DNA of 64,000 bases from sequence record MN871447.1; one strand, given 5' to 3'. The notes under the pieces are model-generated. The model did no database searches, was not told the DNA's origin, and saw nothing but the letters and a program-made list of their open reading frames with translations. This document shows positions 4,846 through 61,840 of this stretch, piece after piece. The translations under genes were made by a program, and so were the position numbers. The stretch's first letter is position 1. Every line of letters begins with the position of its first letter.

Positions 4846-7020
4846 TTACCTATAGAAATTCGTCCCCATGTATTTTTGGAAGTCAGCGTGACGATTAGCG
4901 TTCATCTCCTCGATCTTACCTGCGACGTTAATCGGTTCCGCACCCGCCTCTTGTAAACACTCGTTAAGGTAATTGAGACGTCGTTCAAGCTTCATACTGA
5001 TAATTGGATTATCGGCATTTTCGATGGCTGACAATGTCTTTTCAATTTCACGGTGGAGGAAATCAATCTCTTCCTGCTGCTCGTCAATTTCCTGCGCATT
5101 CCCTGCCAACGCATCTACTGCCCCCGTCAATACCCTTCTGGAATCTAACCCGTAATAGTCTAAGTTCGACCCGTACAATAACAGATAGACGGTCAGAAGG
5201 TAGGCGATAACGGTATCGTCATGTCCACCCGGTGGATGGTCAATTCTTCCGTTCTTCTCGACCAACCCGGTCAATTCCGCAATGAGAATTTTATCATGAA
5301 GTCGTGTAGCCCCTTTCTGCATGGCGATCTTCAAAACGGTTTCGTAAAGCTGACGTCGGGTGGTGGTTCCCGTGCAGAAACCAAACTTCGTTTTACGACG
5401 AATATAGAATGCGTCATCACGACGGTTCATGTCACCCTGCAGCTCAAGGAACGCCGCGGTGTCCACTGACTTATTATCGACAATTAAGTTAAAGATTCGT
5501 TTGAACGGATCAATTCCCTTGCTGTGCAATATCAGACAGAGGTAATCAATAAACGTTTGTCCGGTGGATTTACGTTCTGGGATGAAGACAGCCTTAGGAT
5601 AAGAAATTAACAGATCACCTAAGAACTCAGCGTATTTAGGAATCAGTGCTTCGTTGATTACTGAAATCCCGATAACGTCCGCAGTATAAGGATCAAGGAA
5701 CACCAACGACAGCGCATCTCGTCCACCGCCTTCTGAGGTATCGGCCCCAATGACAAAGGTCATCGTCTTACGATTTGCATCCAGATATTCTTTGGAGACA
5801 TACCAGTGGACAATGTAACCGTTCCTGAAGATTTCGGAATAATCGGAATAACGCTGTGAGGCAATGGCTTTCGCTAACAGCTCTTTATCAATCGGGTTGT
5901 TCGTCCCTGCTGCGGTCCAGATGTTAAAGAAGTCACGGTCTGCTTCTGGGCCACGTGCCATAGCACGACGCATGTTCTCGTAATGCTGTTCGTCAGAGAC
6001 CCCAACCTGGTTGTGACTCCACGTTCCGTTGATTAAGAGTTTCGCATCAGAGGATTTCAGATTGCGCTGAACGATCTCACGAAGTTCTTCTTGACTCCCT
6101 GCGTCGTAAAAGTGCTCAGACCACCGAGCAGCTTCGTTCCACATTTTGAAAACAAAGCGACCATCACGAGACGTTTGGTCACCCGCGGTAGTGGTCATGA
6201 TACTGCCCCAGGGCATGTTTCTCGCTTTCGCTTTTTGAATCGCGGCGTTCATACCGGGCATTGCTGCTTTAAACGCAATTTCGATATAGTTGATGAAGGG
6301 GGTTTCATCCCAGCCTACCGTAGGCGAGGTGTTACCACGGCCGACCTTATTCGCACCACCTGGGTCAGAACGGGATACTGCTACCGCAAACAAGTTACCA
6401 CGGGTGTTATAGGTCACCTTCTCGTTAGCAATCGTGTCTGAACGGTCTGTTACTGTCAGATAAGGCGGCAAGTATTCACGGATACGACGTATCATCGTGG
6501 TTGTTTCAGAACGTAATTCGTCTGATTTGGTCACGAGTGAGATACGGGCCTTTGTATATCGCATATACAGCAGCCAGGAGTAAAGACAATAAGAGATAAG
6601 TGACTTACCAGTCTGACGGGGTTGTATCAACAGGTAATCGATATGGTTCATGTACGACCAGATCAAAGACATGTTCGCGCGGTTTGCCCTTAAAAGATCA
6701 CCTTCTTCACCGACAACCGGCGGAACGCGAAGACACTCTCTGAGATAATACCAGATGTTATATTCCGCTTCGATCTTAATTGCGATCATCTGTTCTTCAG
6801 TCAGATCGGGACTGAAAGGATCGACACCGACAAGGTCCGGGTTTAAAAGTGCAATCGGCCAGTGGTGGTTTTTAATTCCCATGTTTTGTAAGACACCGAC
6901 AAAACGTAGGAATTCTTTGTTTGGTGTATCCCAATCCGGGATAGCAGAGGGATGATAATCCCAATCGCTAAGGTGGAGAATAGGACGCGAGTCATTCTCT
7001 AGAATAATGGAGGAGGTCAT
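4846..7020 (-). CDS. terL: Terminase large subunit (phiKZ-type)
   Basis: Walker A QPRQTGKS, Walker B VGWDE, nuclease motifs IGADTSEG and GHDD; likely start is ATG 7020 after GAGGG (track start 7038). Confidence 0.93.
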   Translation of the reverse strand: MTSSIILENDSRPILHLSDWDYHPSAIPDWDTPNKEFLRFVGVLQNMGIKNHHWPIALLNPDLVGVDPFSPDLTEEQMIAIKIEAEYNIWYYLRECLRVPPVVGEEGDLLRANRANMSLIWSYMNHIDYLLIQPRQTGKSLISYCLYSWLLYMRYTKARISLVTKSDELRSETTTMIRRIREYLPPYLTVTDRSDTIANEKVTYNTRGNLFAVAVSRSDPGGANKVGRGNTSPTVGWDETPFINYIEIAFKAAMPGMNAAIQKAKARNMPWGSIMTTTAGDQTSRDGRFVFKMWNEAARWSEHFYDAGSQEELREIVQRNLKSSDAKLLINGTWSHNQVGVSDEQHYENMRRAMARGPEADRDFFNIWTAAGTNNPIDKELLAKAIASQRYSDYSEIFRNGYIVHWYVSKEYLDANRKTMTFVIGADTSEGGGRDALSLVFLDPYTADVIGISVINEALIPKYAEFLGDLLISYPKAVFIPERKSTGQTFIDYLCLILHSKGIDPFKRIFNLIVDNKSVDTAAFLELQGDMNRRDDAFYIRRKTKFGFCTGTTTRRQLYETVLKIAMQKGATRLHDKILIAELTGLVEKNGRIDHPPGGHDDTVIAYLLTVYLLLYGSNLDYYGLDSRRVLTGAVDALAGNAQEIDEQQEEIDFLHREIEKTLSAIENADNPIISMKLERRLNYLNECLQEAGAEPINVAGKIEEMNANRHADFQKYMGTNFYR

Positions 7021-7067
7021 AGAGTTTCCCTCTGACAACGAAAAGACAATATCATAGGGAATATAGC

Positions 7068-7097
7068 GGTACAGGAGGCCATTAAGCCTCCTGTACC
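7068..7097. terminator. Intrinsic terminator
   Basis: GGTACAGGAGGC-CATTAA-GCCTCCTGTACC. Confidence 0.8.
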
Positions 7098-7111
7098 AAG
7101 GGTTTGTACTT

Positions 7112-8821
7112 TTAACTCAGTGTTTGACGTATGATCAAACCGGAAGACGCAAGTTGTAAATCCACCCCGTTCACTGAACGTACCCAATGAACAAGCGCCA
7201 ATTCACCTACGTGCCCACCGGTTGCAATGGTAAACGTCGTGTTCCAGGCAGAGATCGGTTGTCTGACTCGAATGTTATCCACCTGAAGAATGAAGTGCGT
7301 CGGCATCGGCGCTTCCGTTTCTGTCTCAGTGTCAAACAACGGGTGAAGACGGTAGTATAACCGATCCAACCATTCGTTCTGTGTCTGGGCTCCCATGGTA
7401 AGGTCAGTCGACCAAACCTGAGACGAAATGTATTTCAGACGACATTCTAACGATCCGCCGTAGTCTTCGTCACCCAGTTCGTAGTTGACGTACCACGGAC
7501 TATCAACGCCCGATTCACCGTTGGCCATCAGGGTGATGTCGTTGCTCTGTACATGTCGATAGGAGCCAAACGAAGCAGAGACTTTGGAAATATCAAGCGC
7601 AAAGATCATGTGCTGTTTGGTGTTGTAAAGCGTAGGGTCCCAAACCGCCGAACCCGGCGACGCTTCGATGATATCGGTCACTTCGTACATCGCCAAACGA
7701 TCGAGAGAATACATAAAGTGACGGAGCTTAAACCCGTTACCGTTCCGCTGCCATTCCGGGAACATGAAGAGTTTAACCGCATAGGCATTCGGTAAAGTTA
7801 CAGTTTCGATCGTATAGGGAACCGTGATCGTTCCAGAAGCTGTCGTTGTCCCTTTAAAGCTCTCTGTCGTGTCGAGCTGATAGAAAAGCGTCAGTGGGCT
7901 GTTTTGACCCGATTGCGTCGGGATAAACTCCGCTAAACCAGACAGGTAGATCTTACTGCCGTCCACCGGTTTAATGACCGAGCTGCCATCAGTATACGTT
8001 ACCTTCGCGCTGACATCGATGGAGGTCATCAGAAGATTGACCGGAACATTCAGGCGGTTAGGGTCGGTTGCCGACAGGTAACTGCTGACCAAGGCGACCG
8101 AGTCAATAGAACGTTTCGCTGAATTCGATTGACGAATAATACCAGAGTCAACAACGGTCATTGTGAAACGGGACGTCGGTAACCCCGCAGCGTCGTAGAA
8201 CACCACCAGGACTGTCTCACCGTTGGTGATTTTACGCGTAGCGTTGGCAGTCACGGGAATACGGTAATTACCGGTTCCATCCCCTTCGATTGTCATCAGA
8301 GGGATTTTATCGCTTTCGAGTTCACCGGACTGATTGTAATACGCTGAAAGCACTTCGAGGTTACCAGTACTGGACATGTTAGAGAAAACTCGCACGTAAG
8401 TCGCAGTAGGTTGATAGGCTCTCATTAAACTGTCGAACGCCATCTCCGGTGGTGAAACGGTATTGTCGACATAAACGAAATAGCCAGGTTGTGGGTAACG
8501 GCTACCGACTCCCAGCAGAATATCGATGGAGTTATCAATCGTAGTAGGAACGTTGTACGCAATCCACTTAGAAAGTAACGTTGAGGTATCGACTTCGGTA
8601 ACGATATAGAGACCTGAAGTTTTGTCGAAGATACGGTTACCAACATTCGGCACAAACCGGCCTTTGTTACCGCTACCAATCCCTGCTGGTCCGACATAGA
8701 TCTCGGACATGTCCCATTCTTTCCATAATCCATTCGGGTTCCAAATGGGGACGTCAGACGGCGTACTGTCCGTTAACGCTAATGCGTAACGCACCCCACT
8801 ACTCGTGGTCGATGTGGTCAT
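7112..8821 (-). CDS. Virion structural protein, probable baseplate component
   Basis: 569 aa, beta-rich; sits between terminase and sheath as in phiKZ-like phages. Confidence 0.7.
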   Translation of the reverse strand: MTTSTTSSGVRYALALTDSTPSDVPIWNPNGLWKEWDMSEIYVGPAGIGSGNKGRFVPNVGNRIFDKTSGLYIVTEVDTSTLLSKWIAYNVPTTIDNSIDILLGVGSRYPQPGYFVYVDNTVSPPEMAFDSLMRAYQPTATYVRVFSNMSSTGNLEVLSAYYNQSGELESDKIPLMTIEGDGTGNYRIPVTANATRKITNGETVLVVFYDAAGLPTSRFTMTVVDSGIIRQSNSAKRSIDSVALVSSYLSATDPNRLNVPVNLLMTSIDVSAKVTYTDGSSVIKPVDGSKIYLSGLAEFIPTQSGQNSPLTLFYQLDTTESFKGTTTASGTITVPYTIETVTLPNAYAVKLFMFPEWQRNGNGFKLRHFMYSLDRLAMYEVTDIIEASPGSAVWDPTLYNTKQHMIFALDISKVSASFGSYRHVQSNDITLMANGESGVDSPWYVNYELGDEDYGGSLECRLKYISSQVWSTDLTMGAQTQNEWLDRLYYRLHPLFDTETETEAPMPTHFILQVDNIRVRQPISAWNTTFTIATGGHVGELALVHWVRSVNGVDLQLASSGLIIRQTLS

Positions 8822-12491: not shown

Positions 12492-14561
12492 ATGTCAGAA
12501 CAAATTACGGGATCAACACCCAGAATTTATTACCGCGGTACGAAGGATATTTCGTTCACCCGTTCTACGGGTTCAACGACGACCCTGGCTCTTCATCGAC
12601 CGCTCATCATGTTCTTCGGCCAGAAAGGTCCAACTGTCCCTACCTGGATCGATCCGGTAAAATTCGAAGACATTTACGGTAGCGAAACTACCAACCTTTC
12701 CGGCGTTTATGCGACCCACAGTACTCCTTTTATTAAGGAAGCGATTGCAGCGGGTAACCAGTTCCTGGCCTTGCGTCTGGAACCGGCAGATATCCCTGAC
12801 GTCGCCACGCTGGGTCTCTCCGTCGATTGGGTAAAAACCAAAATCGACGACTATGAGCGTAACGACGACGGAACTTATAAAACCGATACCAACGGTGACA
12901 AAATTCCGCTGGCCACGCAAGTAGACGGGATCAAATTCCGCTTTGTTCTCTCTAAAATTGAGACGGACGAGTCGGGCGTTTCCCAGTACAAAAAACGTAC
13001 CGCTTCTGCGGGGACAATCGGTACCGCTGAGAACCCGTCAACGATCACGCCACTGGCCGATTTCCGTTGCCGTTATAAATCGTCTCTCGGTGCGAATACA
13101 GCGATCCGTATTTGGGCACCGACTGTCAATTCGACTCAGGCCGCTGATGCCGATCTGCAAGAACGTATCAAATCGTTCCTGTACCGCTTCCAGCTCCTGA
13201 CCCGTACCGATAAAAACAGTTCACCAACTATTTTTGAGACGATCTATAATGAAGCGTCTCTGTCGGTCGGTTTCGGTGAGAACTTAGTCGATCCGCAGAC
13301 CGAAGTGGTTTACGATTTCGCGGAACGTATCGAAAGTCGTTACAACGACGAAGATCCATCGACTTACCTGATGTCGCCGATCGATGCGCCGTACCTGTAT
13401 CAGTCCAACATTGATACCGTCCTGAAAGCAGTACAGTCGGTGGAATCCACCTTCGGTACGGTTTCTGACGATGAAGCGGATCTCTACACAATTAACCTGT
13501 TCGGTGCGCAGACGGTAGAGGGTGTACCGTATCACGCTGTTCAGATTATGGGCGTACTGGATGGTGGCGTCACGCTGACAGAAACCTCCACCAACTACCT
13601 GCAAGGCGGTGGTGACGGTACGCTGGGTAACGCCAGTTTCAACGCTGCCGCTAACCTGGTGCTGTCCAACATGTCCAGCGGCGCATCTTTCAATATCGGT
13701 AACTACGCGCGTTATCCGTTCAATGCGTTCTGGGATTCCGGTTTCGACCTGAAGACCAAACAACTGATTCCGCAATTGATCGGTCTGCGTGCAGACACCT
13801 GGATCGCCCTGTCGACTCAGGACATCAGCCTCGACTTCAACAGCAATGAAGAAGAAGAATCGATCGCGCTGTCCCTGATGTCTCGCGTAAACGCTTTCCC
13901 GGACTCCTCTGATTTCGGTACCCCGGCGTTCCGCGGTATGATCGTAGGTGGTGCAGGTTATTACACGGAAACTACGCGTAAGCTGGCGGTCCCGCTGACC
14001 CTCGACCGTTTCCGTGCTTACTGCCAGTATGCCGGCGCTTCTGACGGTGTACTCAAACCGGAATACGCGGTGGATGAAGGTGAGAACCGGAAAGTCCAGG
14101 TGGTTAAAAATATTAACAACCTCGATAAATCCTGGCGCGTTCGTCGTGCGCAGTGGAACAACAACCTGGTTTACGTAGAAGACTACGATACCGGTTCGCA
14201 GTTCTACCCGGGCCAGCAGTCGTTCTACAGCGAACAAGGTTCCGTACTGAAGGCGGCTATCGTGGGTCTGTGCGTGGCTAACCTGAACCGTTTCGCTTTC
14301 GAAGCGTGGCGTGACCTGAGCGGTACTCAGAAACTCACCGACGATCAGTTGATTGAGCGCTCTGACGAAATCGTGAGCACCCGCGGTGCCGGTGCCTTCG
14401 ATAACCGCCTGATCTTCACGCCGCATTCTGAGATTACCCAGGCCGATAAAGAACGTGGTTATTCTTGGTCTATGCGCATTGACTTCGGTGCTAACGCGTT
14501 CCGTACCGTAATGGATATGTCTTCTGTCGCATACACCAGAGAGGAATTAGCAAATGGCTAA
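12492..14561 (+). CDS. Tail sheath protein
   Basis: 689 aa; FFGQKGP and YPFNAFWDSGF motifs, C-terminal RGYSWSMRIDF; strong codon bias; precedes the tube gene. Confidence 0.9.
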   Translation: MSEQITGSTPRIYYRGTKDISFTRSTGSTTTLALHRPLIMFFGQKGPTVPTWIDPVKFEDIYGSETTNLSGVYATHSTPFIKEAIAAGNQFLALRLEPADIPDVATLGLSVDWVKTKIDDYERNDDGTYKTDTNGDKIPLATQVDGIKFRFVLSKIETDESGVSQYKKRTASAGTIGTAENPSTITPLADFRCRYKSSLGANTAIRIWAPTVNSTQAADADLQERIKSFLYRFQLLTRTDKNSSPTIFETIYNEASLSVGFGENLVDPQTEVVYDFAERIESRYNDEDPSTYLMSPIDAPYLYQSNIDTVLKAVQSVESTFGTVSDDEADLYTINLFGAQTVEGVPYHAVQIMGVLDGGVTLTETSTNYLQGGGDGTLGNASFNAAANLVLSNMSSGASFNIGNYARYPFNAFWDSGFDLKTKQLIPQLIGLRADTWIALSTQDISLDFNSNEEEESIALSLMSRVNAFPDSSDFGTPAFRGMIVGGAGYYTETTRKLAVPLTLDRFRAYCQYAGASDGVLKPEYAVDEGENRKVQVVKNINNLDKSWRVRRAQWNNNLVYVEDYDTGSQFYPGQQSFYSEQGSVLKAAIVGLCVANLNRFAFEAWRDLSGTQKLTDDQLIERSDEIVSTRGAGAFDNRLIFTPHSEITQADKERGYSWSMRIDFGANAFRTVMDMSSVAYTREELANG

Positions 14562-19783: not shown

Positions 19784-19785
19784 GA

Positions 19786-20208
19786 TTAGCTCCGTGTGAA
19801 AATGTCTACCCCAAAGAATCCTGGGGCGTCTTTGTAACTGTCACCCAACTTCCAATAGTCATTGAAGGCGCGGCGTTTAAGGGTTATCACCCCTTCGTAT
19901 TCGATCAAGGTTTTATCCGTAATGGCGATATCAGCTTTGATCCCTTTATCGGTCAGTCTGAAATTACCGATGAAGTGAGAAGGCGTCACGATCTTTCTAA
20001 AACGTGCGAAGAATTCGTTAGTATTTTCCCAAGCGAGTTTAGTTAATTGAGGATTAAGTTCACCCTCAAGAACTTGTCTGGTTTTAAACGCCCTTGATAA
20101 CCGTTCGATATCGGCAGCGCGCAGGTAGTTCGGTAAGGGGAGATAAATATTAACTAGTTTACTAACATTAGCCGGTTTAAACACGTTGAATACCCTTTCA
20201 TGAAACAA
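19786..20208 (-). CDS. Hypothetical protein, possible degenerate prohead-protease-like fold
   Basis: GEL..P..., SHFIGNF, LKRRAF, GVDIF pattern. Confidence 0.5.
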   Translation of the reverse strand: MFHERVFNVFKPANVSKLVNIYLPLPNYLRAADIERLSRAFKTRQVLEGELNPQLTKLAWENTNEFFARFRKIVTPSHFIGNFRLTDKGIKADIAITDKTLIEYEGVITLKRRAFNDYWKLGDSYKDAPGFFGVDIFTRS

Positions 20209-20213
20209 AACAA

Positions 20214-20234
20214 ATAAGGGCGAAAACGCCCTTA
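20214..20234 (-). terminator. Intrinsic terminator
   Basis: AAGGGCG-TTTT-CGCCCTT followed by ATTTGTTTTGTTT on the minus strand. Confidence 0.75.
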
Positions 20235-20237
20235 GAA

Positions 20238-22335: not shown

Positions 22336-22623
22336 TTAATTATTTTTTTTTGATGTATTCAAACTACCATAAAACATCAAACCGATGATTCCGGTAAGGA
22401 TAGTTAAAGTTAACAGTTCGATGTTGAAAATAACTGCCCCAATAATAGAGAGGATGAAAATGGCTGAAATGACAGCATAAAGTACTTTAGTATCTTTATT
22501 ACTCTTACCTTTTTCTTCTTCGGTTTTTGCATTCTTGATGGCCAATTTGTTCATTCCAATGGCCGTCCAAAGAACAAAACTTATAACGAAGGTTAATGCA
22601 ATAATGATGATGGAAGTTAACAT
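22336..22623 (-). CDS. Three-TM membrane protein
   Basis: 95 aa, strongly hydrophobic, AAGGA RBS. Confidence 0.75.
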   Translation of the reverse strand: MLTSIIIIALTFVISFVLWTAIGMNKLAIKNAKTEEEKGKSNKDTKVLYAVISAIFILSIIGAVIFNIELLTLTILTGIIGLMFYGSLNTSKKNN

Positions 22624-22957
22624 ATTTTTTTCCTTTACTTTAAGAGTAGACTTAGACGTGAGAGAGTTGTTTGCGTTATAAGAGTCGCATACGACGATGT
22701 CCAGAACCAGACGGCGAAGCCTGTCATTTGTTCTGCAACTACCGAACCAGTAAGAGGGTTTACTGCTATTGTACCTGAACTCTGATCTTTCCTCGATTTC
22801 GGAAGAGTCAGTAGGTACAACGCCACAGCCTCGATTACAGGTGTCGGGTGGGTAACGAGAAATATCGTCTTATAACGGTTTGAGAGTGTGAGAATTTAAT
22901 TTAGCTTATCGTAAGGCGTTTCCTTCTTATCTCGTGTGCCAAGGGTGAGGTGACGAC
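22624..22957 (-). ncRNA. Candidate structured non-coding RNA
   Basis: 10-bp closing inverted repeat (22674-22683 / 22868-22877) enclosing several hairpins, in a 330-nt gap with no RBS-supported ORF. Confidence 0.45.
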
Positions 22958-23245
22958 TTAAGCGGTTACCGCTGCGTCAGAGACGTCGGTCTCGCCTGCG
23001 TCAGTCGCAGTCTCGCCGTCAGTGGCAGGAGAAATGACGGTTTTGAGGTTGTTGTAGCTATCGTGAATATAGCTGAAGATAACCAAGACCGCAAAAGCGT
23101 AGGCTGCCACTTCCATGGCAGTAGCCATGCAGAACGCGGCGAAGATTGCCAGCGCGGCAACGATCAGGGTGTCGGTGATGAAAGCAAAGATTGCTTTGGT
23201 TTTCTCAGTGAAAGAGAAAGAGAAGAACGCTTTGATTTTTTCCAT
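22958..23245 (-). CDS. Two-TM membrane protein with acidic tail
   Basis: 95 aa; AAAGG RBS; ATDGET/ATDAGET repeat. Confidence 0.8.
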   Translation of the reverse strand: MEKIKAFFSFSFTEKTKAIFAFITDTLIVAALAIFAAFCMATAMEVAAYAFAVLVIFSYIHDSYNNLKTVISPATDGETATDAGETDVSDAAVTA

Positions 23246-23853: not shown

Positions 23854-23874
23854 GCAATATATACATCAAAAAAA
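23854..23874 (-). promoter_or_regulatory. Putative early promoter
   Basis: Minus strand TTTTTTTGATGTATATATTGC; nearly identical to 2318-2338. Confidence 0.7.
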
Positions 23875-23930
23875 CTGCATTTCGATTTATTGAAGTTTTT
23901 ATGAAACATCTACCTTGGGGATTGAATACG

Positions 23931-24470
23931 ATGAAGAAAATTACGCTTTGGGGACATCCTGTTCCGTTATTGGGCTTCTTGCATTGGCTGAGTTTTTTAT
24001 TGATCTACTTCGCAGCGTTGATCATTTGCATCATTGTCACACCGTTTCTACCGGCCTTTGCGACGAAGGACGGTAAACTACCGAAATGGCTGAAATGGTT
24101 CGACACACCGGACAATAGTTTAGACGGGGATTCCGGTTGGAAAGAGAAACACTCCCTCTGGGTAAAGGTACTCCCTGAATGGGCGCAAACTTACGTCGCC
24201 CGTATCTTTTGGTTATACCGCAATCCATTGTACGGTTTTTCTATTAGCGTGTTAGGTGCACCAAAAGACAAATTCCGTCAACCTGTTTTAGAGGGTAAAG
24301 GGTTTGATGTTAAAGGCACCTATAAGTCCCATTACTGGATGGTCTACTTCATGCGTGACGACCACGTGAAGAAACGCCGGTTTAAGGTTTACATTGGATG
24401 GAAACTGAAAGCAGAAGGATTTGAGAAATACCAGTTTGCATTTCTGATCAACCCGTTCCAAACGCCGTAA
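23931..24470 (+). CDS. Phage membrane protein on the late strand
   Basis: Track 23901..24470, likely ATG 23931; N-terminal TM; WFDTPDNSLDGD and WLYRNPLYGF motifs seen in other phage proteins. Confidence 0.75.
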   Translation: MKKITLWGHPVPLLGFLHWLSFLLIYFAALIICIIVTPFLPAFATKDGKLPKWLKWFDTPDNSLDGDSGWKEKHSLWVKVLPEWAQTYVARIFWLYRNPLYGFSISVLGAPKDKFRQPVLEGKGFDVKGTYKSHYWMVYFMRDDHVKKRRFKVYIGWKLKAEGFEKYQFAFLINPFQTP

Positions 24471-24483
24471 AAGAAACAAAAAA

Positions 24484-24510
24484 AAGAGAGGGCAAACGCC
24501 CTCTCTTTTT
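24484..24510. terminator. Bidirectional terminator
   Basis: AAAGAGAGGGC-AAAC-GCCCTCTCTTT. Confidence 0.85.
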
Positions 24511-24929
24511 TATACGCGTTTTAGCGATTCAATTTCGATTATCGCTTCAATCTCGAAAAACATTCGGACAAAGAAAGTAGCGATAGACAGAATACCTAAT
24601 AAGTACTCATGGTGAACACAGAGCAGAATGAATAGCGCCACAGCCACGATTAAACGCAGCATAACGTTCATCCCGCCAGTGAAAGTCAGATGCTTCTCTA
24701 TTTTTTGGCGAAGTTTACTTTTGTTCTCTGGCGTCAGCGATATTCTTGAGAGGTCAGGGAAGGAGAAGAACTGGAAACCCAGCCAGAGTAAGCGTATTGT
24801 GATCAACGTGATCACCCAGTAAATTACTGCATCCTCTAATAACGGGATTTTCGCAATAATAAGAATAGCCAGGGCGAAGCAGGAGAACAAAGAGAGTATT
24901 TTGGAAAGTAGGGTCAGCGAGTAAAACAT
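24510..24929 (-). CDS. Four-TM membrane protein
   Basis: 139 aa with four hydrophobic segments. Confidence 0.75.
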   Translation of the reverse strand: MFYSLTLLSKILSLFSCFALAILIIAKIPLLEDAVIYWVITLITIRLLWLGFQFFSFPDLSRISLTPENKSKLRQKIEKHLTFTGGMNVMLRLIVAVALFILLCVHHEYLLGILSIATFFVRMFFEIEAIIEIESLKRV

Positions 24930-28987: not shown

Positions 28988-29483
28988 TATCGGCCCCTTT
29001 CAGATACCCCGTTAAACGATCAACGTGCGGTTGTACCCACTCTATCGAATCGAACTCGTCGATGTGTTCGGCCACGTAACGGATTTTCTCCGGGATAGGC
29101 TGTTTAAAGTGCTCGAGGAAGAGTTTAGCGAAACTGCACCCCAGGGCATCGATCTCCAGATACCCGTCGATGAGCTCTTCAACGGTTACTTCATTCGCCC
29201 GATCTGCGCTATATTGAGAAAGGAGTTTCTCCAACTCAATACCGTGGGGATTAGCCGTGTCGATAATAACGTCGGAGAGGCTTACAAAAGCATGGTTCCC
29301 GCAATCGTAAAAGATCACCTCATGTCCCCACTGCTTCGCTACCAAACCAATACATACTGCCGCCGTCCCGCAATCCCCGGAGTTAATCCGTTTAATCGCA
29401 TCTTCTTTCGATTCACGGGAAAAATAGACCCGGTAAAAATCAACAAACTTATCAACAAGATTCAGGATTGATTCGGTAGGCAT
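28977..29483 (-). CDS. Putative transglutaminase/papain-like Cys-His-Asp protein
   Basis: GDCGTAA, NHAFV, IIDT in the expected order; likely ATG 29483 after AAGGAG. Confidence 0.5.
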   Translation of the reverse strand: MPTESILNLVDKFVDFYRVYFSRESKEDAIKRINSGDCGTAAVCIGLVAKQWGHEVIFYDCGNHAFVSLSDVIIDTANPHGIELEKLLSQYSADRANEVTVEELIDGYLEIDALGCSFAKLFLEHFKQPIPEKIRYVAEHIDEFDSIEWVQPHVDRLTGYLKGADNEQ

Positions 29484-39027: not shown

Positions 39028-41247
39028 ATGAGTGACTTCGGGAATAAGATCAGTGAATTAAACAGTTTGACTAGCGGGAATATGGCAGGAGAGTTACCGC
39101 TAAGTCTGACGTTATCTAGCGGTACTTTGGCGACGAATAAGATCACGTTGAGTCAGGTTCGGGATCTTTTTGATTTTGACCATGCCTTTGAGACAGTGGA
39201 GGAAGGGATTGCTGCAACGGTAGAAAACCAACTCTTCTACGTTTATGTCGACAGTAACAAATTATCAGTCAACGAATACGTCCGAACTAACATTGGCGCG
39301 AATGCGGTCATCGGTAAAAGCGGAACTAAGAAAATTATTTATATTCCCGCGTTATTAAAACACATTCAAATTCAAGTCGATAACTTTTCAGAGATCAGTT
39401 CTGTTCAACCCTCCTTTGAAGGACAGGTTATTTTTTTGAGGGGTTATTATTCAGGGAACAGCCGAGGGGGTGGTAACTTCAAAGCTATTCGTAACAGTAC
39501 GGTAGAAAACGACAATGGTGCGCATGTTAGATACGACGATCAATGGGTCTGGCAACGAGTACCGGATAAAGGTATTTTTTCAGTCTATGATTTTGGCGCT
39601 AAAGGAGACGGTGTTACTGACGATTACTTCGCCTTCCAAGGGGCCACGTACGGTACCTATCAATTCGGTGGCGGCATTATAAACGTACCATCTCCCGATG
39701 TAGCCTTTCGGATTACTTTCCCGGTTTTCTTTTTCCATAAGACGAAAATGATTGGACAAGGTATGGGAAGTAAGGTCATTTTTGAGAACCCTTTGTTATC
39801 GGCTAAAGGCCGCGGTGGGTTTGTAATGGGAAGTTCCCGCGAAGCTAACCGTGTAAAAGGAATGTCGGTATGGCGATCCGGAACAGTCGTCGGCGGAAAT
39901 GTTGCAGATAACACCTTCGTTAACCCTGGACAGAAACAGTATCTCCGCGATAATCAAAACTTGGCGCAGTGCACAAACTGCTCTATTTCCAATTTATATT
40001 TAGTTGCTGTTTATACAGGGAGTAACCTGAACGGTGGTTATGGGATAAACTTAAACAACGCAATGGATATAGAGATCAAAAACATTTATGGCGAAGGGTG
40101 GACAGAGATAGTTAACGTAGGCTCTGATACTATCCCTGAAACCCCGTCTTGCTACCGCGTTAACATCCATAACCTGTACTGTTTAAATCCTAACCAAGAT
40201 AAAACATTCTATAGTCTTGTTTTTGTTGCAAACTCTACTGATGTCACAGTAGATACGGCGATTCAGTATAAACCATTAAAAGACGGTACATTAAATGGTT
40301 CAGGGATAGCGACGAATCTCTGCGAGGATGTAACGTTTACGAATATTCAGATTAATAACCTCGGTCGCTCAGCGTCCTCTGAAGGGGTGTTAATTAATAA
40401 TACAAAAGGTTGTATTGTTCGTGGCCTCTATGTCAATAACGCGAAGAACGGACTGAGTACTTTCTATTCCGATGCCAGTTTCAACGATGCAAGTAAACCG
40501 AATATTTTCAGCGACATCGAGGTGAATAATTCGGATAACGGAATCAGTATTGCAGGTAAGTACGGGATATTCAGTGATTTGAAAGTGAACAACGTAATAT
40601 ACGACGTTTACTTTAGGACCTCAAATGCCCAATTTAATGTACTCAAATTTAAACCGCAAAAACCTTTCTATCGAGAAACACAAACCCCATTTGGTTTCTT
40701 CCAAAACAATACAATTCGCGGGTATAAAATCGGTTATTTGTATTTTACCCCTACGGCGTATCTTGTTACCCCGGCAGCCGATTTATTAAGATACGACGGA
40801 AGGTTTATCGCGACGGGCGTAAATGATGTTATCATGCGAATACCTATCCCGTCATACGTTAACGGAGTTGTAGATGTCCGCGCATTTTTAACTTTTAATA
40901 AGAATAGCCTTGCAGGAAATGCTAATGGACCAACTTCATTTAGCATGACTCTTCGTAGATTACCATCCTGGGATGGTAACATCGGTAATCCGATGCTCAT
41001 GGAATTGACGAACAATAAAATATCAGCTGTCGACAATACAATGAATCCGCAAGACACAACGTTAGTTTGCCAGCCTTCTTCTAACACAGCAAACTCTTCC
41101 GCTGAGGCTTACGCTAACGGTTACGTAACTATGCGTGGATCTTCAAACGGAATGGATAATGCACTAGAGTTATTGGTCATTATGGCAAATAATGTTAACA
41201 ATAACTACATTAAAGAAATTAGAATAGGTGTACTAGTAGATGAATAA
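39028..41247 (+). CDS. Tailspike / beta-helix polysaccharide depolymerase
   Basis: Track start 39010, likely ATG 39028; SVYDFGAKGDGVTDD (pectate-lyase-3-like) followed by Asn-rich beta-helix repeats. Confidence 0.85.
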   Translation: MSDFGNKISELNSLTSGNMAGELPLSLTLSSGTLATNKITLSQVRDLFDFDHAFETVEEGIAATVENQLFYVYVDSNKLSVNEYVRTNIGANAVIGKSGTKKIIYIPALLKHIQIQVDNFSEISSVQPSFEGQVIFLRGYYSGNSRGGGNFKAIRNSTVENDNGAHVRYDDQWVWQRVPDKGIFSVYDFGAKGDGVTDDYFAFQGATYGTYQFGGGIINVPSPDVAFRITFPVFFFHKTKMIGQGMGSKVIFENPLLSAKGRGGFVMGSSREANRVKGMSVWRSGTVVGGNVADNTFVNPGQKQYLRDNQNLAQCTNCSISNLYLVAVYTGSNLNGGYGINLNNAMDIEIKNIYGEGWTEIVNVGSDTIPETPSCYRVNIHNLYCLNPNQDKTFYSLVFVANSTDVTVDTAIQYKPLKDGTLNGSGIATNLCEDVTFTNIQINNLGRSASSEGVLINNTKGCIVRGLYVNNAKNGLSTFYSDASFNDASKPNIFSDIEVNNSDNGISIAGKYGIFSDLKVNNVIYDVYFRTSNAQFNVLKFKPQKPFYRETQTPFGFFQNNTIRGYKIGYLYFTPTAYLVTPAADLLRYDGRFIATGVNDVIMRIPIPSYVNGVVDVRAFLTFNKNSLAGNANGPTSFSMTLRRLPSWDGNIGNPMLMELTNNKISAVDNTMNPQDTTLVCQPSSNTANSSAEAYANGYVTMRGSSNGMDNALELLVIMANNVNNNYIKEIRIGVLVDE

Positions 41248-41255
41248 AAATAAAT

Positions 41256-41284
41256 AAAGGGTGGGCCAGATGGCCCACCCTTTA
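41256..41284. terminator. Bidirectional terminator
   Basis: AAAGGGTGGGCC-AGAT-GGCCCACCCTTT. Confidence 0.85.
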
Positions 41285-41542
41285 TTTTCTCTTTAATGCC
41301 ACCACTACCAAACCCAACACAGGATCCGCAGAATCAGTGCGCACTAACCCGTAACGAGGAAGTTCAATTACTAGTTGAGTGATACGATGTTTTTCTTGTT
41401 CACTTAACGCACTTAAATCTAAAGCGTGAAAATCCTCTACTACCTTAACATCGTCATCGGAGTAAGGGAAAGACCATTCGAGTTTGTTCTGTTCTTTATT
41501 CCCCGGCAAATAAAGGACATGCACCTTTTTGTATACGTTCAT
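41282..41542 (-). CDS. Hypothetical protein
   Basis: 86-aa ORF overlapping the upstream stop. Confidence 0.65.
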   Translation of the reverse strand: MNVYKKVHVLYLPGNKEQNKLEWSFPYSDDDVKVVEDFHALDLSALSEQEKHRITQLVIELPRYGLVRTDSADPVLGLVVVALKRK

Positions 41543-41943: not shown

Positions 41944-41997
41944 ACGCCATGCTCCTTTTAATAGAATGGAGAGTGGCTTTTACCACTCTCCATAGAT

Positions 41998-42819
41998 TCA
42001 TTCTGCGTAGATCGCTAAGGCGGTTTGGCAAATCGGGGAACGTACGCAGTCAGCATCGGTAAAGTTAATTACCGGGATATCTAACTGTTTACGCTCTATC
42101 CGTTCAAGGAGGTCTGCTAACCCCGACTTGACGCCTTTAGGAAGATCGCACTGCTTTAAGTCGCCGTTAATGATGACTGTGGAATTGTCACCAACACGGG
42201 TCAGGAAGAGACGCATCTGGTTGACAGTAACGTTCTGGGCTTCGTCAAGAATAATCACTGCATCGTCAAAGGTTCGTCCGCGCATAAAACTGAATGGTGC
42301 AACTTCGATCTTCTCGATCTCAGGACGAAGACAATACTGAAGGAAGCTTGGTCCCATCCGGCGACGGAGAATATCATAGACCGGACGGAAGTAGGGCAGG
42401 AACTTCTCGTATTGCGTTCCCGGAAGGAAACCCATCTCTTCCTCCGCTGTCAACATCGGCCGGGTCACAACGATTTTTTCAACGCTTTTCTCGCTGAGCT
42501 GATCGACCGCATAGACTGTGGCCAAAAGCGTTTTACCCGACCCTGCAGATCCTGTAGCGACGATCAAATCCCGACTCTGTAATGCATCCATATAGAGACC
42601 CTGATTGACGTTACGGGCTTCTATCGGGCTACGATCACGCTTTTCTTTCTCCATCCCAATATGAGTAACAGGGAAGCTGTTCCCTCTGTTATCAAACTGA
42701 AAAAGTTCCGCTGTTTCTTCATTCGATAGCGAGCGTTGCTGATTGAGTTTACGGCGAGACTCACGACGAACTTCGCGATCCAATTTAGCGTTACTCTTTT
42801 GACGTCCCATCGATACCAC
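41998..42819 (-). CDS. phoH: PhoH family ATPase, enterobacterial-like
   Basis: GSAGSGKT, VVTRP, GFLPG, FMRGRTF, ILDEAQN, GDLKQCD; N-terminal MGRQK as in E. coli PhoH. Confidence 0.95.
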   Translation of the reverse strand: MVSMGRQKSNAKLDREVRRESRRKLNQQRSLSNEETAELFQFDNRGNSFPVTHIGMEKEKRDRSPIEARNVNQGLYMDALQSRDLIVATGSAGSGKTLLATVYAVDQLSEKSVEKIVVTRPMLTAEEEMGFLPGTQYEKFLPYFRPVYDILRRRMGPSFLQYCLRPEIEKIEVAPFSFMRGRTFDDAVIILDEAQNVTVNQMRLFLTRVGDNSTVIINGDLKQCDLPKGVKSGLADLLERIERKQLDIPVINFTDADCVRSPICQTALAIYAE

Positions 42820-44061: not shown

Positions 44062-44388
44062 TTAATGGAAAGAATTAGAGAGCCAGAAACGACATTCGTC
44101 TTGCTGCGTTGCTTCTAGTTTGGTTTTCATCTCAGTGAAACATTTGATGTCGTCACGATGTTTACTGGCGATTTCAGGATCAAGAACTTCTGCCAGTTCC
44201 GCCAGAAAAGTTAAACTCTGAATCGTACGATCAAGGAGTTCAATGGCGCGACTCGTTAACAGAGGACGTTCAATGAGGTCATGCTCGTCTTTAATCGAAA
44301 AGAGCGACTGGAAGACTGTTGAGAGTTCGTTGATTGTAGCGTCGTTATCAGCAAATGACATATTGATTCTCCTTTTATTAAAAAACAA
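44062..44388 (-). CDS. Hypothetical protein
   Basis: Helical ORF; likely start at MSFADND after AGGAG. Confidence 0.7.
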   Translation of the reverse strand: MFFNKRRINMSFADNDATINELSTVFQSLFSIKDEHDLIERPLLTSRAIELLDRTIQSLTFLAELAEVLDPEIASKHRDDIKCFTEMKTKLEATQQDECRFWLSNSFH

Positions 44389-44426
44389 AATAAGAGGAGA
44401 GGGTTACCTCCCCTCTCCCAGCGGTA

Positions 44427-44894
44427 TTATTTCTTTAAAATGTCACTACCGTTAAAGTAGAGTCTCAGTCCAGCGAGACCGAGTTTCTCTACGGCTTCAT
44501 CAACGCCCACCGCCAGTCTTTCAATGACGGTATGTTCCCTACCGCGTAAGAACATAGGCTCGAAGTCATCACTGAAGACACCGTCCAGATGAATCAACAT
44601 CCAAATCTCACCGGTCTCTTTCATACAGACTTCCGACTTACCCAGGTCATTGATGCGCTCAAGACCCAGATCACGTAATATCAGGATAGCTGAACCGCAT
44701 TCATCGCCGAGAATCCAATTATCTTCATCGAAATTTTCTAACTCTTCAAGCAGAACCCCGGCATGATGAAGGACGATATCGTTAACGGCATTGACCATTG
44801 CCGCCGCAGCGTCACGGAATTTCTGTTCGCGTTCTTCACGGCTGTATTTCAGATTAGCAAAAACGCTTAAAGCAGTAGATTTTAAAAATGACAT
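44427..44894 (-). CDS. Hypothetical protein
   Basis: Track start 45101 overlaps the upstream gene; ATG 44894 has a GAGG RBS and an AACTAAAC box. Confidence 0.75.
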   Translation of the reverse strand: MSFLKSTALSVFANLKYSREEREQKFRDAAAAMVNAVNDIVLHHAGVLLEELENFDEDNWILGDECGSAILILRDLGLERINDLGKSEVCMKETGEIWMLIHLDGVFSDDFEPMFLRGREHTVIERLAVGVDEAVEKLGLAGLRLYFNGSDILKK

Positions 44895-44961
44895 TTGACT
44901 TTCCTCTATAAGTTTAGTTGTATAAATGGCAGAGGAACTCCTCTGCCAGGTAAGTGCTTGA

Positions 44962-45660: not shown

Positions 45661-45681
45661 GCAATATATACATGAAAAAAA
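45661..45681 (-). promoter_or_regulatory. Putative early promoter
   Basis: Minus strand TTTTTTTCATGTATATATTGC-CCGA-GTGA. Confidence 0.7.
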
Positions 45682-47203: not shown

Positions 47204-47794
47204 ATGCGTATTGCGGTAGTAGGCCACGTATCAAGGAAGATGGCTATTGAGAAACTCACGAGCGTGCTCCCTTGCGAAGTGTTTCTTGACACAGTAGGGA
47301 CAGGGGCGTTGGCTAACCACATCAAGGCTTTGGAATGGGCAGTCCAACAGGATGAACGCGTTGTTATCATGGAAGACGATGCTATTCCGGTTGAGGGCTT
47401 TATTGAAAAAGCAGAAAAGTGGTTTACTGTTTACCCGGAACAATTCGTCAGTTTTTATCTAGGGACGAGCCGACCACCGCAGTACCAGGAAATAGTAACG
47501 CACTCAATTCTTAACGCTAAACGGTTAGGGCGCGAAGCGATCCGATTAAATCAATTGATTCACGGTGTCTGTTATTCGCCCGCCCCGGGTTCTATTGAAA
47601 AGATCCTAAAGGGAATAGATATGCGAAAACCGGCGGACTTCGCTATCGGGAGTGCGTGGGGTGACCCCGTCTATTACCCCATTAAATCGCTAGTAGAACA
47701 CCGTGACGGTCGTTCAGTGGAAAAGCATACTGACGGTAGGAAAAGTTCAGGGAAACGCGTAGCGCGCTTCTTGGACGGTAATTTGATGTACTAA
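47204..47794 (+). CDS. Glycosyltransferase-like protein (GT25-like)
   Basis: HIKAL...VVIMEDDAIP, HGVCY, PAD, LVEHRD. Confidence 0.65.
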   Translation: MRIAVVGHVSRKMAIEKLTSVLPCEVFLDTVGTGALANHIKALEWAVQQDERVVIMEDDAIPVEGFIEKAEKWFTVYPEQFVSFYLGTSRPPQYQEIVTHSILNAKRLGREAIRLNQLIHGVCYSPAPGSIEKILKGIDMRKPADFAIGSAWGDPVYYPIKSLVEHRDGRSVEKHTDGRKSSGKRVARFLDGNLMY

Positions 47795-47815
47795 AAAAGA
47801 AAGATACGACATAGA

Positions 47816-47850
47816 GTCTCTCCCTTCCTGCCAATGCAGGAAGGGAGAGG
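47816..47850. terminator. Terminator between convergent genes
   Basis: CTCTCCCTTCCTGC-CAAT-GCAGGAAGGGAGAG. Confidence 0.85.
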
Positions 47851-47851
47851 A

Positions 47852-48265
47852 TTATTCTACTAACGTGACGCCTTCAAAGCCATCCACCGTGTAACCGCGA
47901 CATTTAACGAAGGTGATATCAAAAGCGATTTTTCCTAAGTTAAAGAGCGCGTCACCTAAGTCGATCTGTTCAACTTCGATCACGCACGATGCTTCAAATG
48001 TGTAAACCGGCATTTTCTTTTCCGCGACAAAGACAATACGTTTCCCGGAAAGTTCCGCGTCCTTTTTCACTGACTTGATTTTCTCCATCAAGTCTTTCGC
48101 GTTTAAGTCGCCGTACTCGCTGTGAATGAAAAGGATGACCTCCTCTTTCAATTCAGGGGCGACCGCTTTCAAGAAAAGCTCCGCTGCATCCGACGTCTCA
48201 GCGATAATCGATAAGGTATGCTGAGATTTTAAGAACTGAATAAGTAGCTGTTTAACGGGGGTCAT
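47852..48265 (-). CDS. Hypothetical alpha/beta protein, paralog family
   Basis: Pattern similar to 49699, 50064 and 50861. Confidence 0.7.
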   Translation of the reverse strand: MTPVKQLLIQFLKSQHTLSIIAETSDAAELFLKAVAPELKEEVILFIHSEYGDLNAKDLMEKIKSVKKDAELSGKRIVFVAEKKMPVYTFEASCVIEVEQIDLGDALFNLGKIAFDITFVKCRGYTVDGFEGVTLVE

Positions 48266-55678: not shown

Positions 55679-56050
55679 TTATTTGACTAACATTTGTAAT
55701 GAGGCAATAACCGCTTTCAGTTCCTCATTATTGAGAACAAGGTAGGTCGAGTCTTTTTCAAATAAGCCATCGCGGCTCGTTGCGAAAAGATCCATGGGAA
55801 TATCAGAGGAAATGTCACACGTTTTCATTTCCCCCTGGATGAAATCATTGAGTTCATCTCGTTCTTCTGAGGATCTGACTTCAATGTCAATTAAAGGTCT
55901 AAACACAAAGTCATCGCGTAGCGATTCGTATTTAACATTTAGAGCTAGATAACCCGGCTCTAGTTGCCCCTCCGTCCAATCCACCGGTCCAAATACAAAA
56001 AGTGTCCCGGAAGGCAATTTAAGAAATTCTTCTTTAGAATAAAGTTTCAT
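55679..56050 (-). CDS. Phage hypothetical early protein
   Basis: ATG 56050 after AGGAG; EEFLKLPSGTLF motif. Confidence 0.75.
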   Translation of the reverse strand: MKLYSKEEFLKLPSGTLFVFGPVDWTEGQLEPGYLALNVKYESLRDDFVFRPLIDIEVRSSEERDELNDFIQGEMKTCDISSDIPMDLFATSRDGLFEKDSTYLVLNNEELKAVIASLQMLVK

Positions 56051-56119
56051 TGTATTTCTCCTATAGTAGACTGATAAAAATGAAATCGAATTTAATACAT
56101 TCAACTATCTTGCATAACG

Positions 56120-56140
56120 GAGATATATACATGAAACAAA
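56120..56140 (-). promoter_or_regulatory. Putative early promoter
   Basis: Minus strand AATTTGTTTCATGTATATATCTC. Confidence 0.55.
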
Positions 56141-56148
56141 TTGCATAA

Positions 56149-56179
56149 TTCCCTACAGCACGCAGGTGCTGTAGGGAAA
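56149..56179 (-). terminator. Intrinsic terminator after the Nampt-like gene
   Basis: TTCCCTACAGCAC-GCAG-GTGCTGTAGGGAA. Confidence 0.8.
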
Positions 56180-56194
56180 GGTTATGTCTTTAAA

Positions 56195-57976
56195 TTACAA
56201 CCACTGCGTCGCACGTTGACGAATAGTACGAAGACTTTCCAGTACTTTCACGTCGCCGTTCAGGTACACAGTCCGCATCGCGTCAACCTCACTACCGCGA
56301 AGCGCTTCATACTCTTCACGGGTCAGGTTATCACGCAGTTCGAGTTTTCCGTTCTCGCCCTTCGCAACGATCAGGTAACCTTTTGCCGATTTCTTGGTGC
56401 CGTCATCGGTTTTCGGGTTTTTCGCGATAGAGTAATGTTTACCTTTAACCTTCCCAGCGGTCGCCTTCATGGCGATGCCCAGGGTGTCACGGGTAACATA
56501 CTGGAATTCGAAACTGCCCACACCAAAGACCACGTTGGAACTACAGAACCCATTCGCTTTCAAACGAGAAAGGATCTGAGTCATGCGAGTCAATGTGATT
56601 GCATCCCCGTAAATCAAACCGACGTGAGAATCCAGTTCTTTGTAACCCGCAGCATTGGTTGTTCCGCCGAAGATTTCAAAAAGGATTTGCACGGCTCCTT
56701 TTTTCTCTTCCAAAGAAATAGGTTTACCGCTTTCAGTCGAATAGAAAACGTTGTCGATACAATAGCACTCGTATCCGTTTTCAATAGAAAAACGACGAAG
56801 GAACTCTTCCGTCTTTTCTCGACCTATTTCGGAGTAGAGCGTTTTTCCACCAATTCGGGGGTCGGGATAAATGCCAGCAGAAAGGTGATTATCGCCATCC
56901 CAAGTATAGCCGCAGAGGATGTGATACGGATTACCGCTATCCGGGCGATAGACCAGTTTACCGTCACGCGCCATAATCGCATCTTTATTAGCGATGGCTT
57001 TGGTGGTGATGGTATCGAAGAAGTCGTTAGTATCGCTGACGAAGCTGAAAACGCCAGACGGATAAACTTCAGTGATCAGTCGACGTTGGAAAAGTTCTTC
57101 CGCTTTCGACAGCAGTTCCGCTTCAGTCGCATTCTTGTACCCCGGAGTAGCTTGTAACTGCTCGACATAGACTGCGATGTTCAGACAGGTTACACTGTGC
57201 TCTGTAGCTGGCACACTCCCGGCGATTTCTGAGATCGGCATATCGCCTTCTGGGTTATAGAAGCGATTCGCTGTCCAGACCGAAGGGAAGCTATCGCTCC
57301 CTTTGAAGTAGATCAACTGACCGACTGAACTGTTGGCATCATCGAACATCCCCGACATACCGCGCAGAGCGAAGTTATGAGATTGGTAGTCGATAAAGGC
57401 TTTTGCCGCACCCGTTTCGTTGGCGTACTGCTCTAACACTCGACGGAAGTGCAACGCTTTCGTTGCCAGCACACACGGCTTCCAGAGTTCGTTACTCCAG
57501 AGATCTTCGAAGTAACCCGTCAACCACCCGAAGCCATCCACTGTGTTTTCAATCGTCAGGAACGGAACACGAATAGGGACGAGTGAGCCTTCTGGTACCG
57601 CACGGATTTCCAGTGGGAGATAACCCAGCTTGTGAAGTGCTTTCAGGTGAGCGGATTTTACCACACCTTTACCCAGAACACCGTCCATATACTGGAGATA
57701 CTCCGCTTCCGATTCGTTGAACGGCGCTTTAAAGAAGTTATCGAAACTCCCTACCAACCAACGCAGAACAAGCCGCTGCATTCCCATGAACACCGAACCG
57801 TCGAAGTCCAGAGGCGTATTGAAGTACGTATGGCTACGTGCCGTCAGGTTTTCAAAGAAGCTGTCAGTGCCCAGAGGTTGTTGGTTGATGTGCCCAGTTT
57901 TGTAGGCATCGCACAGCAGGAAAACCAGCGGATCTTCAGTATAGAACTTTGGGTCTTTCAGTAAAGGGTTGGTCAT
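56195..57976 (-). CDS. Nicotinamide phosphoribosyltransferase-like enzyme (Namat of NARP1, or Nampt)
   Basis: DAYKTGH, HNFALRG, FKGSD, VPATEHS, VSDT.D, RPDSG, GLIYGDAIT, FGVGS, KSAKG. Confidence 0.9.
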   Translation of the reverse strand: MTNPLLKDPKFYTEDPLVFLLCDAYKTGHINQQPLGTDSFFENLTARSHTYFNTPLDFDGSVFMGMQRLVLRWLVGSFDNFFKAPFNESEAEYLQYMDGVLGKGVVKSAHLKALHKLGYLPLEIRAVPEGSLVPIRVPFLTIENTVDGFGWLTGYFEDLWSNELWKPCVLATKALHFRRVLEQYANETGAAKAFIDYQSHNFALRGMSGMFDDANSSVGQLIYFKGSDSFPSVWTANRFYNPEGDMPISEIAGSVPATEHSVTCLNIAVYVEQLQATPGYKNATEAELLSKAEELFQRRLITEVYPSGVFSFVSDTNDFFDTITTKAIANKDAIMARDGKLVYRPDSGNPYHILCGYTWDGDNHLSAGIYPDPRIGGKTLYSEIGREKTEEFLRRFSIENGYECYCIDNVFYSTESGKPISLEEKKGAVQILFEIFGGTTNAAGYKELDSHVGLIYGDAITLTRMTQILSRLKANGFCSSNVVFGVGSFEFQYVTRDTLGIAMKATAGKVKGKHYSIAKNPKTDDGTKKSAKGYLIVAKGENGKLELRDNLTREEYEALRGSEVDAMRTVYLNGDVKVLESLRTIRQRATQWL

Positions 57977-61826: not shown

Positions 61827-61840
61827 ATTAAAATGAGATA

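Follow-up and report, generated by a model that had tools for sequence, protein, structure and literature searches.

A probable new functional RNA with a conserved five-helix fold between membrane-protein genes of Klebsiella jumbo phages

The stretch of DNA analysed here, 64,000 nucleotides in length and referred to below as the window, was identified at 100% identity as part of the 305-kb genome of Serratia phage KpLz_1_41 (MN871447.1), whose isolation host is Klebsiella pneumoniae. KpLz_1_41 is a jumbo phage near genus Siatvirus in the family Chimalliviridae, and nine more records, including that of Klebsiella phage KpLz-2_45 (genus Siatvirus), contain the same stretch at 98-99% identity. 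Siatvirus and its sister genus Maaswegvirus have been assigned to the Chimalliviridae (PMC12451628), and FBKp24, a Maaswegvirus phage, has genes for the tubulin and nuclear-shell proteins of jumbo phages that form a nucleus (10.1101/2021.03.02.433402). A gap of 334 nt (22624-22957) separates two minus-strand genes of KpLz_1_41, located at 22958-23245 and 22336-22623. In a preliminary description of the window this gap, given as about 330 nt, was counted among the longest, and on a crude ORF map it ranks third. The nested pairings listed there are all present, with the 10-bp repeat and the arms at 22769-22820 exact and the remainder readable in the sequence. Other long stretches without an ATG-started ORF are located at 44362-44961, 19784-20237, 28988-29291 and 61827-62076 (600, 454, 304 and 250 nt, respectively), and several of these four overlap strongly structured loci. 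The features of the locus, in the direction of the minus strand, are as follows.

23854-23873, minus strand: early-promoter-like motif, a T-run and then ATGTATATATTGC, about 1 kb upstream of the element and recurring at other operon starts
22958-23245, minus strand: upstream gene for a 95-aa membrane protein, conserved with the RNA and 44% identical in amino acids to FBKp24 gp278
22878-22957, minus strand: 5' flank with the conserved blocks CACCCUYGGCACAC (22934-22947), GAAGGAA..CUUAYGAU and CUCACWCUCUC (22882-22894)
22674-22877, minus strand: core domain of about 205 nt, consisting of closing stem P1 and arms P2-P5, as derived from the MFE structure, independent folds of relatives and compensatory pairs
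22868-22877, minus strand: 5' arm of P1, CGUUAUAAGA, part of an exact 10-bp inverted repeat
22855-22868, minus strand: P2, a small hairpin stacked on P1; FBKp24 has a hairpin with a bigger loop in the equivalent position
22742-22847, minus strand: P3, a long interrupted arm of about 37 bp in eight sub-helices, which includes the 52-nt hairpin noted in the preliminary description; matched helix by helix in FBKp24
22827-22835, minus strand: AUCGAGGCU, at the conserved internal loop of P3, with AGUAAAC..CUCU on the opposite strand; invariant in all three lineages
22792-22799, minus strand: AAAUCGAG, apical loop of P3; invariant
22699-22739, minus strand: P4 arm, CAGAAC/GUUCUG around GAC-GGC/GCC-GUC, with four compensatory pairs; 100% of the cells of its basal helix are paired
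22685-22697, minus strand: P5 hairpin, register UCG(C/U)/GCGA with a 5-nt loop; conserved in register and invariant in sequence
22674-22683, minus strand: 3' arm of P1, UCUUAUAACG, part of the same exact 10-bp inverted repeat
22635-22826, minus strand: 63-codon ORF, judged not to be a gene, lacking true relatives and interrupted in FBKp24
22624-22673, minus strand: 3' flank, little conserved except for the RBS AAGGA (22631-22635) and the start of the next gene
22336-22623, minus strand: downstream gene for a 95-aa membrane protein, a swappable cassette; three unrelated genes are found here in three lineages

A promoter had previously been proposed at position 23854, and an early-promoter-like motif lies exactly there; none was found inside the gap. 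The combination of T-run and ATGTATATATTGC recurs at four or five other places in the window, with copies at 45661-45680, 2318-2337 and 56120-56139 (all on the minus strand) and a looser one near 26790; a small hairpin stands after each copy, and TAACTAAAC comes next, approximately 20 nt before the RBS. The copies are probably early (virion RNA polymerase) promoters with a conserved 5' leader. The motif in the window fits the AT-rich early-promoter motifs described for jumbo phages with RNA polymerases of their own (PMC7598289). The minus strand carries 83 of the 95 crude ORFs, and the next promoter-like motif downstream of the element is approximately 21 kb away. Since the element is located about 1 kb downstream of such a motif, it would be part of an early polycistronic transcript.

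The downstream cassette was compared among the lineages. Its versions (22336-22623 in the window, 2739-3011 in L001 and 3253-3567 in L013, which is FBKp24) are all small membrane-protein genes that are mutually unrelated, and all three start with ATGTTAA behind a common RBS. Even among the ten near-identical phages, half have the downstream gene replaced by an unrelated one, with the junction at its first codons. This swap junction is about 50 nt from the element, which itself ends some 40-50 nt before the RBS. Conserved blocks are found in the 5' flank, and the spacer from P1 to the RBS is not conserved. When the full gap was folded the core remained intact, and no conserved helix formed over the RBS.

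The 212-nt core was folded on both strands and compared with shuffled sequences. On the minus strand the MFE was -68.9 kcal/mol (z -4.1), with none of 200 shuffles equally good, while on the plus strand it was -69.5 kcal/mol (z -3.2). The full 334-nt gap folded no better than its shuffles (z -1.5 and -1.2), so that folding beyond shuffled controls, which had been put forward as a check for the gap, holds for the core and fails for the gap as a whole. An RNALfold z-score scan of the whole window placed the core at rank 39 among the 86 loci that reached z <= -3, counting non-overlapping loci of 150 nt or more. A shuffled copy of the window contained 41 loci with z <= -3, four of them with z <= -3.8, compared to 39 loci with z <= -3.8 in the real window. 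A regression scan likewise showed that the core is no outlier within the KpLz_1_41 genome. The core fold is better than chance, at roughly p 0.03 for one gap, and is not exceptional in this structure-rich genome. As its z-score is ordinary for the genome, folding alone is weak evidence and could not settle the matter. Loci with z-scores of -5.6 to -7.1, stronger than that of the core, were recorded at 41135-41330 (+), 13068-13255 (-), 47687-47865 (-), 7017-7211 (-), 56016-56197 (+), 41945-42149 (-) and 61869-62093 (+), located partly in gaps and partly within coding sequence.

Relatives of the locus were then compared. In the ten phages of the KpLz_1_41 type (98-100% identity) the core varies at only four sites, which is not enough to support any test. 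Two of the four seemed to break pairs, and one of these was later accounted for by the conserved register of P5; in that register the window's own C-to-U change gives a U.G pair. A U-to-G change in five of seven close relatives disrupts one pair of the 9-bp helix of P3. When the neighbouring 189-aa protein was used as a tblastn query, it picked out FBKp24 and Centimanus, at 87% aa identity, and, further removed, Serratia phages of the Moabite-like group. This protein, encoded opposite the operon at 23901-24470 (+), has relatives in over 600 phage records, unlike the orphan genes around it; these include T4-like Aeromonas phages and phages of Escherichia, Klebsiella, Salmonella and other hosts, and a metagenomic homolog contains Pfam DUF7338. 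Beside it, the 32 nt between convergent genes at 24480-24511 match contigs from several metagenome and RNA runs that then diverge into unrelated sequence on both sides, which suggests a short repeat or terminator common to many loci or phages.

FBKp24 and Centimanus, both of genus Maaswegvirus, have the same gene order as the window and a 393-nt gap at the syntenic place. Between two genes that are adjacent in FBKp24 (L013), Centimanus carries an extra gene annotated as an endonuclease (L014 6118-7086), which looks like an insertion of the homing-endonuclease type. BLASTN gave no link between the gap of the window and that of FBKp24 and Centimanus. In a global alignment the cores of the window and FBKp24 are approximately 48% identical, which is not above the flanking genes, and since nucleotide identity is no higher in the core than in its neighbours, the fold is what is kept. 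The FBKp24 core (L013 3619-3833, minus strand), folded alone, has the same architecture of closing stem, small hairpin, long interrupted arm with eight sub-helices, third arm and terminal hairpin, with most of the helix sequences different. A covariance model, R1, was built from window-type sequences and the window MFE structure only, and it recovered FBKp24 and Centimanus over their full length, with scores of 45 and 44 bits (E about 3e-11 and 7e-11); when sequence alone was modelled from that alignment, no relatives were found. In the model alignments (A6 and A8), which were fitted to the structure by the model and are therefore biased towards it, 26 of 69 pairs had changed on both sides with pairing kept, and 89-92% of cells were paired. 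In a control in which the 3' partner was slid by 1-3 columns, 2-8 double-changed pairs were kept and 34-44% of cells paired. The consensus energy for the two lineages was -49.5 kcal/mol (SCI 0.73), as against -10.6 +/- 3.6 for column shuffles.

A third sublineage was obtained on two Logan (metagenomic) contigs using a profile of the upstream protein. Its core differs from that of FBKp24 at 28 of 221 columns and adds independent compensations, namely UA to AU, GC to AU, AU to GC and a block change in basal P3. Folded alone, this core (L025) assumes the shape seen in the window and FBKp24, and the three single-sequence folds are free of the bias of the fitted alignments. Unaided prediction with RNAalifold recovered P1-P5 with 28 compensatory pairs, which stem from three lineages and hence from few independent events; four pairs, all in P3, show three to four pair types (alignment columns 42-140, 66-113, 78-98 and 82-93). 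The compensatory change in homologs that the preliminary description had called for is thus abundant, as 26-28 double-changed pairs still pair, and a spacer evolving neutrally, with identity down to about 48%, would not retain so many pairs by way of double changes. The element is known from 12 phage genomes, at one locus in all of them, and from a few metagenomic contigs. A search with R1 did not find it in the Moabite-like phages, which do have the neighbouring 189-aa gene, and a motif pattern scan of viral sequences matched only FBKp24 and KpYy_2_45. The one match to the motif pattern in a metagenome scan lies inside a dxr-like gene and was rejected as chance. By these searches, the element appears to be restricted to two Chimalliviridae genera of Klebsiella phages, Siatvirus and Maaswegvirus.

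The individual helices were examined for sequence change. Four of nine pairs of P1 are compensatory relative to FBKp24. Within P3, TTGTACCT and AGGTACAA (22769-22776 and 22813-22820) form an exact inverted repeat, and the 9-bp helix reads GUUGUACCU/AGGUACAAU in the window and GCGAUUCA/UGAAUCGU in FBKp24. No variation is seen in AUCGAGGCU, AAAUCGAG of the apical loop, AGUAAAC, UGCA or any part of P5, all of them unpaired or fixed in sequence. Inspection by eye revealed no conserved loop-loop pseudoknot. An alternative pairing with a third copy of CGTTATAAG (22580-22588, inside the downstream gene) was rejected, as this copy is due to a SNP of a single phage and is absent from all relatives; all three copies of CGTTATAAG in the 64 kb fall within 300 nt. 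The functional unit is the 205-nt core with the conserved 5'-flank blocks rather than the whole 334 nt.

Folding energies, whether of the core MFE or of the consensus folds, do not separate the two strands. The minus strand is supported by two internal U.G pairs present in all lineages, by two within-lineage C-to-U changes that preserve pairing on this strand only, and by the neighbouring genes, which are on the minus strand; two helix-end positions are better suited to the plus strand. A count of 13 G.U against 0 A.C pairs was set aside as strand evidence, since it is biased by the derivation of the structure from the minus strand and each strand's own fold is equally G.U-rich. A conserved 63-codon ORF would have spoken against a non-coding reading. 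This ORF has no relatives in 1.84 billion representative proteins, three matches being translated tandem-repeat artefacts, and the FBKp24 gap is without a counterpart, its only sense ORFs being of 37 and 30 codons and located elsewhere. The changes in close relatives, read by eye, comprise one synonymous and three non-synonymous. The ORF is not conserved and is absent from the homologs, so the non-coding reading stands. Within the conserved 5' flank of FBKp24 (L013 3878-3913), AGGAAG resembles an SD sequence and precedes an ORF of 11 codons that opens with AUGAUG; this mini-ORF is not conserved, the window having ACG there.

The window was also compared with known RNA families. None of the 4227 models of Rfam 15 matched at gathering score anywhere in the window, and at E <= 10 the window and FBKp24 gave only eukaryotic snoRNA/miRNA noise located outside the core or touching its edge. 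No known ribozyme class was matched in the Rfam search, and ARAGORN detected no tRNA or tmRNA in the window. The gap contains no sense-strand intrinsic terminator: P1 is followed by CGCAAACAAC, and the sole terminator-like site, at 22710-22725, is on the plus strand with a weak tail. The earlier statement that the gap has no U-tract, tRNA, tmRNA or member of a known RNA family was thereby upheld.

These results indicate that the core is very likely a new functional RNA. It is highly probable that it constitutes a conserved, autonomously folding domain of about 205-220 nt, in which P1 encloses P2, P3, P4 and P5 and which carries invariant motifs. A novel phage ncRNA or cis-regulatory RNA, as originally suggested for the gap, is therefore supported by the conserved fold, by the lack of an Rfam family and by the absence of the ORF from homologs. 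To the best explanation taken as a whole, the conserved domain together with a proposed role in processing or stabilising the transcript between cistrons, we assign a probability of roughly 0.5. What has been observed is the fold and the fact that it is conserved; that the element is transcribed, is processed and binds a partner is what we infer.

As to mechanism, we suggest tentatively that the element functions at the RNA level, as a module placed between cistrons and coupled to the conserved block of genes upstream of it. Its long P3 arm, together with the domain closed by P1, would form a processing and/or stability element, either as a target of an RNase, double-strand-specific or otherwise, or as a structure protecting a 3' end, and this would set the conserved upstream cistrons apart from the variable cassette that follows. 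Contacts for a protein or for a tertiary fold may be provided by the invariant AUCGAG motifs and by P5. The P3 arm, with a comparable arm in FBKp24, provides at least about two turns of irregular double-stranded RNA between cistrons, as is characteristic of an RNase III-type site. Intercistronic processing or stability is the most economical mechanism given the linkage to the upstream gene, the independence from the downstream gene and the long double-stranded arm. A five-helix domain with invariant loops nevertheless exceeds known RNase III sites in complexity, and it fits a trans-acting or ligand- or protein-binding RNA equally.

It is possible, if less probable, that a stable trans-acting ncRNA is cut from the early transcript, perhaps with its 5' flank, and serves as a protein sponge, scaffold or decoy. 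The invariant loops and five-helix complexity make such an excised, partner-binding ncRNA a close second: the closed architecture is complex, the loop and internal-loop sequences and P5 are invariant, and the element is independent of the identity of the downstream gene. The expression of non-coding RNAs has been reported for phiKZ-type phages (PMC13282480), which also favours this explanation. On the other hand, a promoter and terminator of its own were not found, and the conserved motifs of the core are not enriched elsewhere in the 305-kb genome, which leaves no obvious target set. The sequence is present in public sequencing runs: two 151-nt contigs of a wastewater metatranscriptome touch the gap, one of them running on into the alternative downstream gene, and two other RNA runs gave thin coverage of the neighbouring genes; no discrete species is evident in the metatranscriptome contigs. 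The contigs touching the gap are compatible with read-through transcription and equally with DNA carry-over.

A more speculative and rather doubtful reading is that the element represents a new functional RNA class of nucleus-forming jumbo phages, be it a ribozyme, a ligand or protein sensor, or an RNP scaffold on the early transcript. If this were true, it could have a role in the mode of infection, for example in handling or marking early mRNAs made before the phage nucleus exists, in recruiting ribosomes or host factors, or as a decoy against RNA-directed host defence.

Control of translation, action on the polymerase and roles at the level of DNA are less likely than either the processing module or an excised ncRNA. 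A cis-regulator of the next cistron's translation, in the form of a riboswitch-like or protein-operated 5' UTR element, is unlikely. Its position would be suitable, as the domain ends shortly before the RBS and neither the RBS nor the opening codons ATGTTAA vary between lineages, but three unrelated genes would have to be under its control, conservation is absent from the stretch between P1 and the RBS and is found in the 5' flank, and the full-gap folds contain no conserved RBS-sequestering helix. No riboswitch expression platform was conserved either, as judged from full-gap folds and comparison of the 3' flank.

It is still less probable that the RNA acts on the transcribing polymerase by processive antitermination, as do HK022 put and Bacillus EAR, in order for the early polymerase to read through a long operon. 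The promoter-proximal, intergenic position within a long same-strand run of genes would agree with such an action; against it, the element resembles neither EAR nor any other Rfam family, and this is the sole operon of the phage to carry the element, which is present once in 305 kb.

A DNA-level element, whether an insertion of the MITE type, a site of recombination bordering the variable cassette, a cruciform or an origin, appears very improbable. The core does end in an exact 10-bp terminal inverted repeat (22674-22683/22868-22877), a MITE-like trait, abutted by a 5-bp direct repeat, GTTTG (22669-22673 and 22878-22882), that resembles a target duplication, and the equal folding of both strands and the nearby gene-swap junction could be read in the same way. 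FBKp24, however, has no flanking direct repeat, compensatory change extends across all internal helices and is not restricted to the ends, and the element occupies the same syntenic place in lineages that are about 50% diverged. No second copy was found in the 64-kb window or in the other 241 kb that make up the genome. Searches of phages, plasmids, E. coli genomes, viral contigs and 185,579 species genomes likewise gave no other copy. Four matches to the inverted-repeat pattern in the scan of those 185,579 genomes proved to be unrelated chance matches. A MITE or transposon remnant was rejected on the grounds that the element is single-copy and at the same locus in 12 of 12 phages. Finally, the lack of any function, either as a decaying spacer with an incidental fold, for which the ordinary z-score and the one pair broken in most close relatives might speak, or as a small protein gene, with the stop codon of the 63-codon ORF 14 nt before the next start, can practically be dismissed in view of the covariation at about 48% identity and of an ORF that is missing from FBKp24 and without relatives.

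To our knowledge, hardly any work has been devoted to structured RNAs in nucleus-forming jumbo phages, and the element may bear on how these phages process, stabilise and translate their early transcripts. It is a well-delimited, covariation-supported candidate in cultivable phages (KpLz_1_41 relatives and phiKp24), and its helices can be mutated and restored. It also marks the border between a conserved block and a cassette in which small membrane-protein genes are exchanged, and may thereby bear on the expression and shuffling of the accessory region. Should it be only an RNase site, it would still make a useful annotation and a new Rfam family.

Among known systems, the early operon of phage T7 contains RNase III processing hairpins, R0.3-R1.3, which are single hairpins of about 50-60 nt between cistrons. 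The element resembles these as a structured intercistronic RNA in what we take to be an early polycistronic phage transcript, as a long irregular hairpin with internal loops (P3), and in a presumed role in separating or stabilising cistrons. It differs in being a 205-nt closed domain of five helices with invariant loops, and in that its transcript would presumably be made by a multisubunit polymerase of the phage, whereas the T7 early transcript is made by that of the host. The Rfam family EAR sits between the second and third genes of the Bacillus eps operon. Like HK022 putL/putR and EAR, which act in cis on a long transcription unit, the element is a structured RNA inside an operon; unlike them, it has another architecture, matches no Rfam sequence or structure, and occurs once per genome. 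Many orphan structured RNA motifs from comparative genomics are Rfam families of unknown function. The element is similar to those orphan motifs from phage and metagenome intergenic regions in being defined by covariation, in its phage context and in having no known function, and differs from those in Rfam by matching 0 of 4227 models and by its very narrow range. The ncRNAs of phiKZ (PMC13282480) come from the same family, Chimalliviridae, and are likewise phage-encoded RNAs of unknown roles, but the element is restricted to two genera of Klebsiella phages and no homology would be expected. The nearest analogies, T7 RNase III sites, put/EAR and the phiKZ ncRNAs, are functional only, and the element belongs to no known family.
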